From positions 21,187,700 through 21,251,699 of the forward strand of contig OZ037768.1 of assembly GCA_964035545.1 (NCBI GenBank): a stretch of DNA of 64,000 bases, read 5' to 3'. The DNA comes from Bugula neritina (lineage: Eukaryota; Animalia; Bryozoa). The notes beneath the pieces are model-generated. The model saw only the letters and a list, made by a program, of their open reading frames with translations. It searched no databases and was not told the DNA's origin. How positions within the stretch are numbered: position 1 is the first letter of the stretch; the number at the start of each line of letters is the position of its first letter. Shown one piece after another: positions 22,609 through 47,274 of the stretch. Both the position numbers and the translations under genes were made by a program.

Positions 22609-25600
22609 ATGGCTGATAGCGGAGTCAGCAGACCAGATGAAGGTTCCAAATAGAATAATAAGCTTATTCTAATAGAGTCGATGGAAATAAAATTTTGAAC
22701 ATTCATGGCCTTAACTAATTTATAAAATTTTAGGATTAGAAAAAATAATATCTTTTATGTTTTGAACAAAAATTATTGATGTAATTGTTGGAATTTTATT
22801 TTTAAATTATTCATTAAGATTATTGACTACTTATAATAAAACTATAAAATAGATAATATTTGTAAGATGACAGTTCATCAGTACATGCACAGTTGATACA
22901 CAGAGCAAGATTGTAGACTAGTATCTAGAAAGATTGGTGGTTAGAATTAGTTTTCAGCTTTTTTGTTCTTTGTTAAAGTTTGTAGCAGTTCATCCTTTAT
23001 ATTTTGTAGGCTTTTACAGACTCTGGTTTGGATGTGATGATGCGAGTTTCCGAAAGAACTGGAGAGGGGAAGTAACAGCAGAATACACCATTCAAATATA
23101 TACCATTCAAAGAATAAAGCAGAATCCTGAAGCCAGAACTGCAACACACCTCATCCTATTTGAACAAATCCCACCAGACATCCATCTTCTCTTTCCACAA
23201 GTCACTCATCTCAATATTAAATGGCCTCAACTATTTTCCCAACAAAAGTGAGACTTCAATCAGAATATAACAAAATCCTAAAGTACTTTACTAATTGGTA
23301 GATGGCAACAAGAAAAAATGAAAAAGCTTATAACTGTTTTCTAAATTTAGATCCTGGCTTTTTGACATGTGTACATTACACAGCATTTTTATCTATGAGC
23401 AGCTCATGAGTTGACAGTATAAAAACATATAAATATATATATATATATATATTAGAAGAAATAAAATGAGATTTGATTAATATAATGGCATTTATTACTA
23501 GTAGTTTCGTACACAAGAACGATGTGCACTCGTCAGATAAATTAGCCACATCGTTCTTGTGTACGAAACTACTAGTAATAAATGCCATTATATTAATCAA
23601 ATCTCATTTTATTTCTTCTAATGTTTACGCTCTAGATTTATTTCTATAGAGCACTCTAGTAACGTTTTATAAACACTCATTTTACTATATATATATATAT
23701 ATATATATATATATATATATATATATATATATATATATATATATATATATATATATATATATATATATATATATATATATATATATATATATATATATAT
23801 ATACCGCGTAACTTGAATACATTGCACCTGACTTGACTGTGTGTTTTACTATGCAATTTGCAAACTTTGTAGCTTTGTGTCCACTCTGTCTACTTTATGT
23901 TCATTATATATAGTATGATGATAATAATTCTGCTTTTCACATCCTCTCCTTTGAGATGTAAACCCTCGCACTCACCATTTAATATGATGTTCAAATCTCA
24001 GATTATTAAGGGTAGGTAATTGTTTCCAAATGGACTAAACTTGTACTAATATATATTTATTGTTACAGCATCAGCAAGTTGACTAATCTGAAGGTATTAC
24101 ATATGAGTAACGATAACTTTTTTACTGGTCTACCTGACATCGTCAGTTCTCTACTCTCTTTGGAGGAGTTGAAGTTGACAGACTGTGGACTACAAACTCT
24201 CCCCATCAGGTAAAACATACTTTATATCTCCTGTGTTATATGCTAATATGTTATACTTGAAGAAATCCTAGCTTAGCTTCGATGTCTCATTTTTCATATT
24301 TAATAAAAGTGGGTATCTGTTAAATAATATACAATTCTATAAACTATCTAAATCAACATCATAACCTGCTGCATAATTTTTCACCCTAAAAACACATTAA
24401 CAGGCTTTCTCTAGGTGTTTCTGCTCATATTATTCGCATTCAATAATTCAAAGTAGTAAAATTACCAGAGTTAAATATAGAGTTTTACAAACCAAAATAA
24501 GCTTCCTATAATATGTAATAATTCTAGAAAGACAGTCATTTATATTTATACATGATGAAAAACATTACATTATAGGCTTTTACTCCCCACTGATAAATTA
24601 CCCTTTTAAAGTTAAACTTTTCTGTAAACATATATAGCATAGTTTCTTATCCCTGAATTATTGAATCCCATGTATTCAACTAAACTCATTAACACATTTT
24701 ATCTAACATATATGCATATGCATTCTATTTTCTATATAACTAAAAGCAGTTTTGAGTTGTTTCAGTGCTCTGTAAACTGAACATTCTAAATGCTGTTGCA
24801 CTAATTCTTGCATTTTGTTAATTTTGTTAATGGTGTAAACTTTTTCTTGTAAAATATTTTTTGAAGTAATCAGTTGTTATATGACATATCTTTAAAGCCA
24901 TTATCAAGAATTATTTACCCGTTCAAACTAAAATATACTTATACTGTTATATTTTATTGTTACATGCAGCATCAGCCAGTTGACTAATCTGAAGGTATTA
25001 GATATAAGTAACAATCACTTTTATGCTGGTCTACCTGATATCTTCAGTTATCTACTCTCTCTGGAGAAGTTGGAATTGAGACACTGTAGACTAAAAACTG
25101 TCCCCAACAGGTAAAACACACTTTATATCTCCTGTGCTATATTGTTATACATGAATATAGTAACCCTGGCTTAGCTTTAATATCTCCATGCATTAGATAT
25201 TTAATATTTTTATATTTCCATATAGTTAATATTACACTGCAGTCTCTACCTGATTTTTTCTTAGTCTTATAATTTTTGTATCTATAACAATTTTGAGTTT
25301 TAGATTTTTTACCTGAACATGTTGCATTAAGTTTTTTTTTAGAACCAGTTGGTTTTGAATAAGTTGTTTACACTCATTTCAATTTTGTAACTTGAATACA
25401 TTGCACCTGACTTGACTCTATAATATTTTGCTATTCAATTTGTAAACTTTGTAGCTCTGTGTCTACTCTGTCTACTTTATGTTCATATTCCTTCTTCACA
25501 TTCTCTGTTTTGAGATGTAAAACCATAATTTGGCATCTAATATGATTTTCAAAACACGGGTTAGGGTAGTTAATTGTTTCCAAATGAACTAAACTTGTAC

Positions 25601-46600: not shown

Positions 46601-47274
46601 ATGGAAAAAAAAATATTTTCACTGTTTAGCCATTTGCACGCACAAAGAGACTTGGTCATATAATTATTGTGAAGCTAGCTCTCACTAAGTATTTTTAGCT
46701 TTTACATAGTATGTTTATTGTTTAGTTAATATCTAGGAGTAAGCCCTTATCTATACTATACCACAATATACCAGCCTGATAATGTAGTGGCATTAAAGGC
46801 ATAATGTGCTCAGTTATGCAAATGTCAATAGTAAAGTTTTATTTTTTTAGCTTTTTGAGAAAATAAGATAGAATTATTTTACTTTAAATTTTGCATATGT
46901 ATACTTTATATTATTTATTATATTATTCTGCAAGAATACTAAATATTTTCAATAGTGATTAGCTAATCGCGTAAAGTTTTTAGTAAACCTATGTGAAGTT
47001 TTTTATTTTCTTGTTTACATAGAAATCAAACATTAGCATGAAATTATAAAACATAGTTTTTTTTATAAGAAGAATAAACCTTTTAATTTATTTTCATTTA
47101 TTCCAATTTAATTTGTTCTCATCACTAATATTATAGGTTCAGCAGAAGGTTAGAAAGACGTGTCTGAAGAGACAGCTCCATGAAGGACAGCTGGTATTTA
47201 CATACGATAATCTAACTAATGGGAGACAACTCTATCTCTTTCCTGGATTTAATGGACATAGACGGAGAGAGTGA
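22609..47274 (+). CDS. ROCO-caspase fusion: LRR - ROC GTPase - COR - acidic linker - caspase (p20+p10), ~1383 aa, ~15 exons
   Basis: Exons 22609-22642 and 23010-23247 (both tentative), 24069-24209, 24970-25110, 25619-25759, 26537-26677, 27398-27538, 41107-43178, 43832-43915, 44236-44426, 44854-45024, 45388-45610, 45940-46125, 46459-46568, 47137-47274. All junctions are GT-AG and phase-matched; total 4152 nt. ROC: [20 protein letters not shown]: [13 protein letters not shown]. Caspase: [42 protein letters not shown]. Confidence 0.85.
23451..23622. repeat. Perfect inverted repeat, 76-bp arms with a 20-bp spacer, between (TA)n tracts
   Basis: 23451-23526 is the exact reverse complement of 23547-23622. 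Confidence 0.95.
23686..23803. repeat. (TA)n microsatellite
   Basis: About 59 TA units. Confidence 0.98.
23808..27560 (+). repeat. Tandemly duplicated LRR exon/intron cassettes (five 141-bp exons, two LRRs each)
   Basis: Each exon starts cag|CATCAGC(A/C)AGTTGACTAATCTGAAGGTATTA and ends at a gtaaa donor. Flanking introns are also paralogous (e.g. 23808 vs 25387; period ~1.55 kb for exon pairs). Confidence 0.93.
26688..26795. repeat. Two abutting palindromes (26688-26753 imperfect; 26750-26795 perfect)
   Basis: ctttatatctcctgtgctatgctatacatg...catgtatagcatagcacgggagatataaag, then aaagattatgcacaggataacta|tagttatcctgtgcataatcttt. Confidence 0.9.
28313..28598 (+). repeat. 5' LTR of element 2 (286 bp)
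   Basis: tgtagtgg...cacaaca, followed by the PBS. Confidence 0.96.
28600..28617 (+). other. tRNA-Leu primer-binding site
   Basis: TGGTGGCAGCGGTGGGAT, identical to the element 1 PBS. Confidence 0.9.
28660..34056 (+). pseudogene. gag-pol: Element 2 single-frame gag-pol (gag with CCHC knuckle, PR, RT, RH, IN, Pro-rich tail), disrupted
   Basis: [14 protein letters not shown] knuckle, LLDSGC and YLDD in ORF 28660-31215. Premature TAA at 31213-31215 and frameshifts near 31435, 32080, 32385 and 33040. IN DDE motifs in 32204-33082. Confidence 0.93.
34122..35179 (+). CDS. Element 2 accessory ORF (acidic N-terminus, C2H2 + CPC finger, Pro-rich region, C-terminal coiled coil; frameshift near 34940)
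   Basis: [49 protein letters not shown], then [22 protein letters not shown] in frame 34976-35179. Confidence 0.85.
35871..37108 (+). pseudogene. Element 3 reduced pol: pre-RT segment, tether, IN zinc-binding domain and tail; RT/RH and IN core absent
   Basis: [10 protein letters not shown] (pre-RT) joins in frame to [29 protein letters not shown] (post-RH). HQQAH..CGVC is followed by DLVD and then the tail ([22 protein letters not shown]). Confidence 0.8.
37137..37894 (+). CDS. Element 3 accessory zinc-finger/coiled-coil ORF (one frameshift near 37600)
   Basis: [34 protein letters not shown] and [20 protein letters not shown]. Confidence 0.8.
38175..38518 (+). repeat. 3' LTR of element 3 (344 bp)
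   Basis: tgtaatggg...cacaaca, preceded by the family PPT-like motif. Confidence 0.9.
39053..40694. mobile_element. Foldback-like element: ~380-bp inverted arms around ~875 bp of nearly pure A/T sequence
   Basis: tggtaccgcgagtttatataagttataaagg (39067) is the reverse complement of the sequence ending at 40680. Similarity continues inward to 39435 / 40311, and the spacer begins and ends with (TA)n. Confidence 0.75.

Follow-up and report, generated by a model that had tools for sequence, protein, structure and literature searches.

In bacteria, counter-invader proteins composed of LRR, AP-GTPase (ROC), COR and caspase domains were described by Kaur et al. 2021 (PMC8195603), the supplement of which holds about 36 caspase-bearing entries. 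The bacterial AP-GTPases share their domain order with the bryozoan gene described here, the effector slot after COR is variable and a defence role was proposed. However, they are prokaryotic and known from computation only, whereas the gene studied here is spliced, encodes an animal-type p20/p10 caspase and has its ROC-COR in a bryozoan-specific clade. Amphioxus 'LRRs-caspase' genes were proposed as immune-to-death shortcuts by Zhang et al. 2008 (PMC2575513), an idea that, like ours, links recognition directly to apoptosis; the 2008 text is silent on ROC-COR, and its genes may be the same as the Branchiostoma LRR-ROC-COR-caspase models. The LRR-ROCO candidate immune receptors of brown algae (PMC3341825, PMC11378527) are expanded, carry their LRRs on separate symmetric exons and show concave-face diversification. 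However, each algal exon encodes one LRR per 72 nt as opposed to two per 141 nt here, and the C-terminal peptidase of algal group 3 belongs to the trypsin-like clan (IPR009003) and is not a caspase. Human MFHAS1, LRRK1/2 and DAPK1 have the LRR-ROC-COR core and fold in common with this gene but are single-copy and conserved, with a kinase output or none and no protease. The NLR inflammasomes and the Apaf-1 apoptosome follow the same logic of a repeat sensor, an NTPase switch and a proximity-activated caspase. In contrast to the present gene, in which a GTPase of the dimerising type is covalently joined to the caspase, they are ring-forming STAND ATPases that recruit a separate caspase via death-fold domains.

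The gene lies on the forward strand of a 64,000-nucleotide stretch of the Bugula neritina genome (the window). On a reading that we hold to be somewhat better than even, it belongs to a family of intracellular receptors that has expanded in bryozoans; each receptor is a single chain with the architecture LRR-ROC-COR-linker-caspase, in which an adaptor-free caspase would be activated by dimerisation in defence. Protein clusters with the same architecture number at least 14 in Watersipora, 3 in Bugula and 12 in Branchiostoma, and the family is large and divergent (94 clusters at E<=1e-30). The bryozoan members are united by a ROC-COR clade with 100/100 support and by shared intron positions. Database models from Watersipora and Bugula have the same domains and intron positions as the gene in the window, which differs from them in its EVCSG motif; their automatic labels ('MFHAS1 homolog', 'CASP8' and 'uncharacterized', as in XP_067947674.1, XP_067948342.1 and KAF6024315.1) miss the fusion.

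The gene model comprises 15 exons with compatible phases throughout and no internal stops, and encodes 1383 aa at the DNA level (Table 1). Searches were run exon by exon, while whole-protein comparisons relied on three natural full-length database homologues (P0031, P0101 and P0169). Exon 2 weakly matches the same-sized exon 2 of a Bugula homologue (P0152, E 0.018) and also P0157. LRR exons 3-7 are tandem duplicates of exon plus intron, with 74-85% nucleotide identity. The coordinates that the earlier note had given for the ROC-COR exon, the two linker exons and the start of the first caspase exon were all borne out on re-checking, and the run from the ROC-COR exon to the last of the five caspase exons is indeed in phase and stop-free.

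Table 1. Exons, GTPase motifs and the intronic element, in positions of the window
Feature	Position	Strand	Evidence
Exon 1, putative ATG exon, 11 codons	22609..22642	+	Uncertain: phase fits, donor score only 1.3
Exon 2, N-terminal cap and first degenerate LRR, 238 nt	23010..23247	+	Open frame, strong GTGAGA donor
LRR exon 3, 141 nt, phase 2/2, two LRRs	24069..24209	+	Pfam LRR, phases
LRR exon 4, 141 nt, phase 2/2	24970..25110	+	80% aa identity with exon 3, phases
LRR exon 5, 141 nt, phase 2/2	25619..25759	+	Likeness to other LRR exons, phases
LRR exon 6, 141 nt, phase 2/2	26537..26677	+	Likeness to other LRR exons, phases
LRR exon 7, 141 nt, phase 2/2	27398..27538	+	Pfam LRR_1 E 5e-8
Nested or tandem Ty3/Gypsy LTR retrotransposon, intron 7, outside protein	28304..38591	+ (sense to gene)	Pfam protease, RT, integrase; LTR segments 96-100% identical
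Exon 8: three LRRs, ROC GTPase, COR-A, COR-B, Cys-rich C-terminal element; 690 codons	41107..43178	+	Pfam, AlphaFold, Foldseek
P-loop G1 GNTMAGKT	41417..41440	+	Intact, near-invariant in 58 family members
G3 DMGG	41579-41590	+	Intact, near-invariant in 58 family members
G4 THKD	41786-41797	+	Intact, near-invariant in 58 family members
Exon 9, helical linker, 27 aa	43832..43915	+	Phase 1/1; conserved in L002
Exon 10, acidic flexible linker, 63 aa	44236..44426	+	Phase 1/0; conserved in L002
Exon 11, caspase large subunit start; S1 Arg179-equivalent 44932-44934	44854..45024	+	Peptidase_C14 E 2.8e-10; PDB caspase matches
Exon 12, catalytic His 45469-45471, Cys 45601-45603 in atypical EVCSG	45388..45610	+	Peptidase_C14 E 2.7e-10
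Exon 13, inter-subunit linker and small subunit start	45940..46125	+	Strong donor; same boundaries and similar end motif in P0031/P0171
Exon 14, small subunit; Arg341-equivalent 46473-46475	46459..46568	+	phmmer: P0143 (E 2e-8), P0046, P0031
Exon 15, small subunit end (LYLFPG) and stop	47137..47274	+	phmmer: P0031 (E 6e-4)

In exon 8, Pfam recognized LRRs, a Roc domain above the cut-off (E 5.5e-7) and, weakly, COR-A and COR-B; COR after ROC was also matched structurally to Roc-COR and isolated COR (3dpt, 3dpu, 6hlu). The switch I Thr at residue 139 is intact and near-invariant in the 58 family members, as are the G motifs of Table 1. The nucleotide-binding domain is a ROC GTPase and not a NACHT or NB-ARC ATPase of the NLR/STAND type. 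As modelled by AlphaFold (pLDDT 89.8), this exon has the fold of LRRK1/2 and the C. tepidum Roco, with LRRK1 (E 1e-21) and C. tepidum Roco (E 1e-18) as the top Foldseek matches. Orthology with MFHAS1, LRRK or DAPK is not indicated, given the C-terminal caspase, the absence of a kinase and the placement in a bryozoan-specific multi-copy clade, the latter in a tree built without vertebrate sequences. Across ROC-COR and the linkers, dN/dS values of 0.24-0.43 show purifying selection on the predicted switch and on the segments that tether it.

Peptidase_C14 was detected in exons 11 and 12 (E ~3e-10 each). The His-Cys dyad is present (SHG plus C, with Pfam and PDB caspase matches), both S1 arginines occupy the family positions (QRKGS in exon 11, AVRH in exon 14), and the caspase exons contain [22 protein letters not shown] as well as LYLFPG. 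The 36-aa exon 14 is conserved among homologues. Every fused caspase examined, 17 from bryozoans and 13 from amphioxus, retains the catalytic His and Cys. The top PDB match was caspase-8 for exon 12 and caspase-9 for the Bugula domain, and no CARD, DED or Death prodomain was detected, with no death-fold match in the scanned exons or the full-length homologues. The design is probably that of an initiator caspase, so the label 'executioner' used in the earlier note was probably wrong.

That an LRR-ROCO gene stopping at 43192 and a neighbouring free caspase gene were joined by prediction only is barely credible, even though the splicing is read here from comparative genomics, many database entries are ROC-COR-only ORFs and the unspliced exon 8 ORF stops at 43190-43192, 14 nt past the donor. 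That donor (CAT|gtaagt, closing an exon that opens after a ttttacag acceptor) was described earlier as strong and preceding the stop; its score of 9.4 is the highest in the gene and exceeds those of more than 99% of the GT sites nearby in the region. The ROC-COR-only ORFs themselves speak against two genes, in that 44 of 50 genomic paralogue ORFs terminate by reading through the same phase-1 T|GT donor. The donor and exons 9-11 are kept in a related locus (L002), with 59% aa identity, the same splice sites and dN/dS 0.27 for exon 9, and 70% aa identity and dN/dS 0.31 for exon 10; in a contig of 79% identity, exons 8-11 and their splice sites are the only part conserved (dN/dS ~0.25). The NCBI annotation of Watersipora and that of Bugula GCA_010799875, made independently, place their splice junctions identically, P0031 has a 27-aa exon at the position of exon 9, and the caspase lacks a separate start exon or prodomain. 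Metagenome scans with the caspase exons yielded no transcript and no close copy, only two intronless caspases without ROC (L009, L010). The splicing of exon 8 into the predicted caspase exons is well supported, and the fusion proposed earlier is strongly supported by homologous gene models of full length, by introns at identical positions and by the conservation of splice sites and codons. It is also quite unlikely that, in a functional family, this particular copy is degenerating or non-proteolytic (a decoy, a cFLIP-like regulator or a young pseudogene disrupted by retrotransposons). In favour of this reading are EVCSG, against QACx in each of the 17 bryozoan homologues, LTR elements both within intron 7 and ~170 nt before the ATG of exon 1, and the frameshift and insertion in the ROC-COR exon of near relatives L002 and L006, which imply fast turnover. 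However, none of the 15 exons is interrupted and their splice sites are canonical, the catalytic dyad, the two S1 arginines and the G motifs are preserved, and dN/dS is ~0.25 against three close relatives. The replacement of the otherwise invariant Gln-Ala by Glu-Val before the catalytic Cys may weaken or alter Asp specificity.

The domains, GTPase motifs, His-Cys dyad, S1 arginines and conserved splicing are evident at the sequence level, and the mechanism that we infer from ROCO and caspase biochemistry is most likely nucleotide-gated ROC-COR dimerisation activating a tethered initiator-type caspase. Roco proteins undergo COR-mediated, nucleotide-dependent dimer cycling, as reviewed in PMC6337361. 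The C. tepidum Roco is a dimer in its GDP or nucleotide-free state and is converted to a monomer by GTP (PMC6337361), so the direction of the switch needs specifying. The resting protein would be a GTP-bound monomer with an inactive caspase. An encounter of the LRRs with a microbial or damage ligand, or clustering at a surface, would favour GTP hydrolysis and COR/ROC dimerisation; the linker of ~90, mostly flexible residues would then allow two caspase domains to dimerise and self-process in an initiator-like manner without CARD/DED adaptors, with cell death or inflammatory cleavage as the defensive outcome. Such ligand gating without CARD or DED, as put forward in the earlier note, is plausible. 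In the predicted structure of P0169, the ROCO and caspase regions form separate folds, the latter that of a caspase, joined by a low-confidence linker in which the equivalent of exon 10 is disordered. Dimer gating is established in C. tepidum Roco and LRRK2, and is predicted for the bryozoan clade. An in-frame ATG at 41090 was considered as the start of a sensor-less form and rejected as a family feature, because it is kept in L006 but not in L002.

Given a real fusion, the protein could instead be a constitutive dimer or oligomer whose caspase is auto-inhibited by the LRRs, the ROC or the acidic linker and is released by cleavage or by a nucleotide-driven conformational change, as with ROC on the kinase in LRRK2/DAPK1. 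Purified Roco proteins are mainly dimers (PMC6337361), and the conserved exon 10, with its strong acidity and many Asp sites, could fill the basic S1 pocket or be cut. However, the linker is predicted to be disordered and its exon varies from 11 to 63 aa among homologues, features to be expected of a tether more than of a fixed allosteric contact, and we regard auto-inhibition as unlikely. The ligands, too, might be endogenous and the role one in development or colony physiology, such as polypide degeneration to brown bodies, metamorphosis or allorecognition at colony borders. Bryozoan polypides cycle through programmed degeneration, allorecognition is also served by variable receptors, and microbial and self ligands are indistinguishable by sequence. 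In contrast, the paralogues number dozens, diverge fast and turn over by birth and death, and their LRR faces are variable, a pattern seen more often in conflict genes than in developmental regulators, which makes a non-defensive role very unlikely. The exon-coded LRRs vary in their predicted concave-face residues: pN/pS is 1.59 at these positions and 0.83 elsewhere in the LRR exons, and variability is higher at the face positions (p=0.013), in a test on five non-independent exons.

The Branchiostoma models (at least 12 clusters; e.g. XP_002614028.1) have the architecture of the bryozoan gene, five caspase exons with equivalent boundaries and a phase-1 intron after COR. However, their LRR-ROC-COR lies in one exon, their caspases have QACRG and their ROC-COR is only ~20% identical to the bryozoan one. 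A single bryozoan and amphioxus ROC-COR clade was marginally disfavoured (AU p=0.044, with long branches). The caspase clades were separate as well, in a tree with few references and without caspase-1, -2 and -8, while the caspase introns are shared. In amphioxus, proteins closely related to one another carry a caspase, Death, GT4 or OTU domain in the slot after COR, which resembles the situation in the bacterial counter-invader AP-GTPases. The uniqueness implied by the earlier note was overstated in view of the bacterial and amphioxus precedents and the models in two bryozoans and several Branchiostoma; it holds insofar as no characterised animal ROCO-caspase was found. Outside subscription papers, the literature yielded none on the bryozoan family or on animal ROCO-caspases, nor did we find a functional test of an LRR-ROC-COR-caspase. 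Tentatively, bryozoans may possess dozens of adaptor-free, GTP-gated death receptors, in which exon-modular LRRs act through a ROC-COR dimer switch on a caspase. These would be a GTPase counterpart of the NLR inflammasomes that arose independently of those in amphioxus and bacteria, and substrate specificity would be shifting in some members, such as the EVCSG copy.

In LRRK2, as in all other ROCO proteins, the way in which the nucleotide cycle of ROC-COR governs an output domain is still an open question; a natural ROCO with a dimer-activated protease, if the mechanism holds, would allow the switch to be read directly, by fluorogenic assay or by cell death. Immune sensing by ROCO LRRs has been proposed for brown algae and bacteria but not shown. 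Our data point to an undescribed, expanded family of putative innate-immune receptors in Bryozoa, hidden by labels such as 'MFHAS1 homolog' and 'CASP8', and a one-chain apoptosome may have been assembled repeatedly, given that bacteria, amphioxus and bryozoans all have this design.

Intron 7 measures 13.6 kb, of which ~10 kb consists of the Ty3/Gypsy LTR retrotransposon; this recent, sense-strand element may uncouple the LRR exons.

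The gene under study comprises 15 exons on the + strand (22609 to 47274), and an exon-by-exon check gave 4152 nt, or 1383 codons plus stop, with all junctions AG/GT and phase-compatible and with internal stops absent. The window is AT-rich (about 30% GC), its two GC-rich islands being LTR retrotransposons. Pfam assigned LRRs to exons 3-8 and Peptidase_C14 to exons 11 and 12; exon 8 also matched Roc (E 5.5e-7) and, weakly, COR-A and COR-B. The coordinates and motifs given in the earlier note all proved correct. Exon 8, modelled by itself with AlphaFold (pLDDT 89.8), was structurally closest to LRRK1, C. 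tepidum LRR-Roc-COR and LRRK2 (E 1e-21 to 1e-16). The product is a ROCO protein; it is neither an NLR nor a canonical initiator caspase and, judged by architecture, the gene is not an orthologue of MFHAS1/LRRK. The exon 1 donor is poor, and that of exon 12, after EVCSG, is moderate to weak (GTTATC), with homologues spliced at the same position. A GC donor follows the QACSG exon in two Bugula genes (contigs L001, 6279, and L004, 16722).

The proposal that the ROC-COR exon continues in phase into the caspase was upheld, at the sequence level, by homologue models, exon plan, conservation in contig L002 and read-through ORFs. Database proteins that combine LRRs, ROC-COR and a caspase in a single chain make up at least 14 clusters (90% identity) in Watersipora subatra (e.g. 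XP_067947674.1), and Bugula neritina has two full-length ones (P0171 and P0152) and a third protein spanning COR plus caspase (P0143). On their own contigs, homologues share a plan in which LRR exons of 46-51 aa lead to a single large ROC-COR exon, followed by one of 22-27 aa, an acidic linker exon and caspase exons of 53-60, 73-74, 53-72, 36 and 43-46 aa, against 57, 74, 61, 36 and 45 aa in the window. The JGI contig L002 (79% identical DNA) is alignable over exons 8, 9, 10 and 11 only, and its AG and GT coincide with those of the window gene; dN/dS in this comparison was 0.24-0.29 for exon 8 and 0.25 for exons 9-11 pooled. Unspliced calls of genomic paralogues mostly (44 of 50) end in Pro-Cys, then Lys/Glu/Met/Thr/stop, then unrelated short tails, whereas spliced family models continue differently after the T|GT donor; these endings are evidently translated read-through of that conserved phase-1 donor. 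Going by gene models and genomic conservation, the gene is real and well supported, and two separate genes in place of one fusion are very improbable.

The nearest sequences (85-91% identity) come from two JGI samples, and the family, comprising 94 clusters (50% identity) at E<=1e-30, is an expanded bryozoan one. At least 12 Branchiostoma clusters have this architecture too. Since their closest ROC-COR relatives bear Death, GT4 or OTU domains in the caspase's place, the post-COR slot is exchangeable. Bryozoan ROC-CORs form their own clade (support 100/100); forcing them together with caspase-bearing amphioxus ROC-CORs was marginally rejected (AU p=0.044, with long branches), and the fused caspases fall in two separate clades in a tree with few references. 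Amphioxus and bryozoan genes do, however, have in common the caspase exon boundaries and a phase-1 intron after COR. Separate assembly of the two fusions is favoured. An ENA metagenome yielded a eukaryotic contig (L008) whose intronless 1680-aa ROC...caspase ORF at 10001-15043 has QACRG and lacks LRRs (P0236; also P0239); it may represent a third fusion-bearing lineage. Other combinations included a protist LRR-ROC-COR-CHAT (P0241), an amphioxus COR-caspase-GT4 (P0199), HEPN-LRR-ROC-COR-CARD (P0107) and a perhaps mis-joined Watersipora model with FN3 repeats after the caspase (P0170). Intronless animal-type caspase genes without ROC, unlike human ones in sequence, were found on VSKX01 contigs (L009, 6570-7465; L010, 700-1643).

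The earlier note knew of no characterised animal ROCO with a C-terminal caspase, and a literature search covering few subscription journals turned up neither a description of the bryozoan family nor any mention by name of an animal ROC-COR-caspase; functional studies of one were likewise absent. The bryozoan family is undescribed in the literature covered; the design has published precedent in bacteria and partly in amphioxus. At least 24 effector types, caspases among them, occur in bacterial LRR+AP-GTPase+COR proteins, which are described as counter-invader systems (Kaur et al. 2021, PMC8195603). Amphioxus LRRs-caspase genes were presented as recognition-to-apoptosis shortcuts, with no GTPase noted (Zhang et al. 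2008, PMC2575513). Brown-algal ROCOs have exon-modular, diversifying LRRs (PMC3341825, PMC11378527), and one survey mentions about forty domain combinations in animal ROCOs. Five LRR exons of the window gene are tandem duplicates of exon plus intron, with differences concentrated at concave-face x positions (pN/pS 1.59 vs 0.83 elsewhere, p=0.013, from only five related exons).

The predicted structure of a natural homologue (P0169) has a well-folded LRR-ROC-COR, a short helix, ~45 disordered residues and an independent caspase fold. Roco proteins dimerise mainly via COR, and in C. tepidum Roco, as in the model for LRRK2, GTP binding gives monomers, the GDP or empty state being dimeric (PMC6337361). 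Dimerisation activates initiator caspases, artificial dimerisers being enough, according to work cited in PMC2575513. Because these Roco proteins dimerise without GTP and initiator caspases are activated by dimerisation, the resting protein would be an inactive monomer held by GTP; LRR engagement or clustering would trigger hydrolysis, and the resulting dimerisation would pair the caspase domains. We cautiously favour this GTP-gated one-chain receptor, in which the architecture is observed and sensing, gating and outcome are putative; such a protein may work as a one-chain apoptosome, and the mechanism is unusually easy to test. A constitutive dimer with allosteric caspase release is a less probable account, and a role in development or allorecognition seems improbable. 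Unlikely, too, is a degenerate or regulatory window copy: the G1, G3 and G4 motifs and the switch I Thr are intact, as they are near-invariantly family-wide, catalytic His and Cys are retained here and in 30/30 fused caspases examined, and both S1 arginines are present. EVCSG is peculiar to this copy, against QACx in 17/17 bryozoan homologues. The Gln of QACxG helps to bind P1 Asp, and an acidic residue there marks Arg/Lys-specific metacaspases and MALT1. Since Glu replaces Gln, caspase activity or specificity may be altered.

Other features of the window
Feature	Position	Strand	Details
Ty3/Gypsy LTR retrotransposon	14996-22437	minus	96-97% LTR identity; separate gag and pol ORFs
Two related LTR elements	28304-38591	plus	intron 7; nested or tandem, with hybrid LTR pieces
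DNTTIP1-like spliced neighbour gene	about 51500-59600	minus	dimerisation domain at 55875-56204, E 1.7e-18
C2H2 zinc-finger remnant	8801-9255		broken reading frames
Interspersed repeat	1947-2222 and 4273-6088
50-nt tandem array	53172-53785		about 12 copies
Long degenerate (AT)n tract	39440-40310		in intron 7

Intron 7 is filled by a recent sense-strand Ty3/Gypsy insertion, in which no env was detected and a 320-aa ORF (34122-35084) had no Pfam match. The minus-strand element, 69-78% identical to it, lies upstream of the predicted ATG, its end about 170 nt away, and either may affect expression. This retroelement family is shared with a Bugula neritina contig. An 81%-identical copy of the interspersed repeat splits the ROC-COR exon of a close relative (L006).
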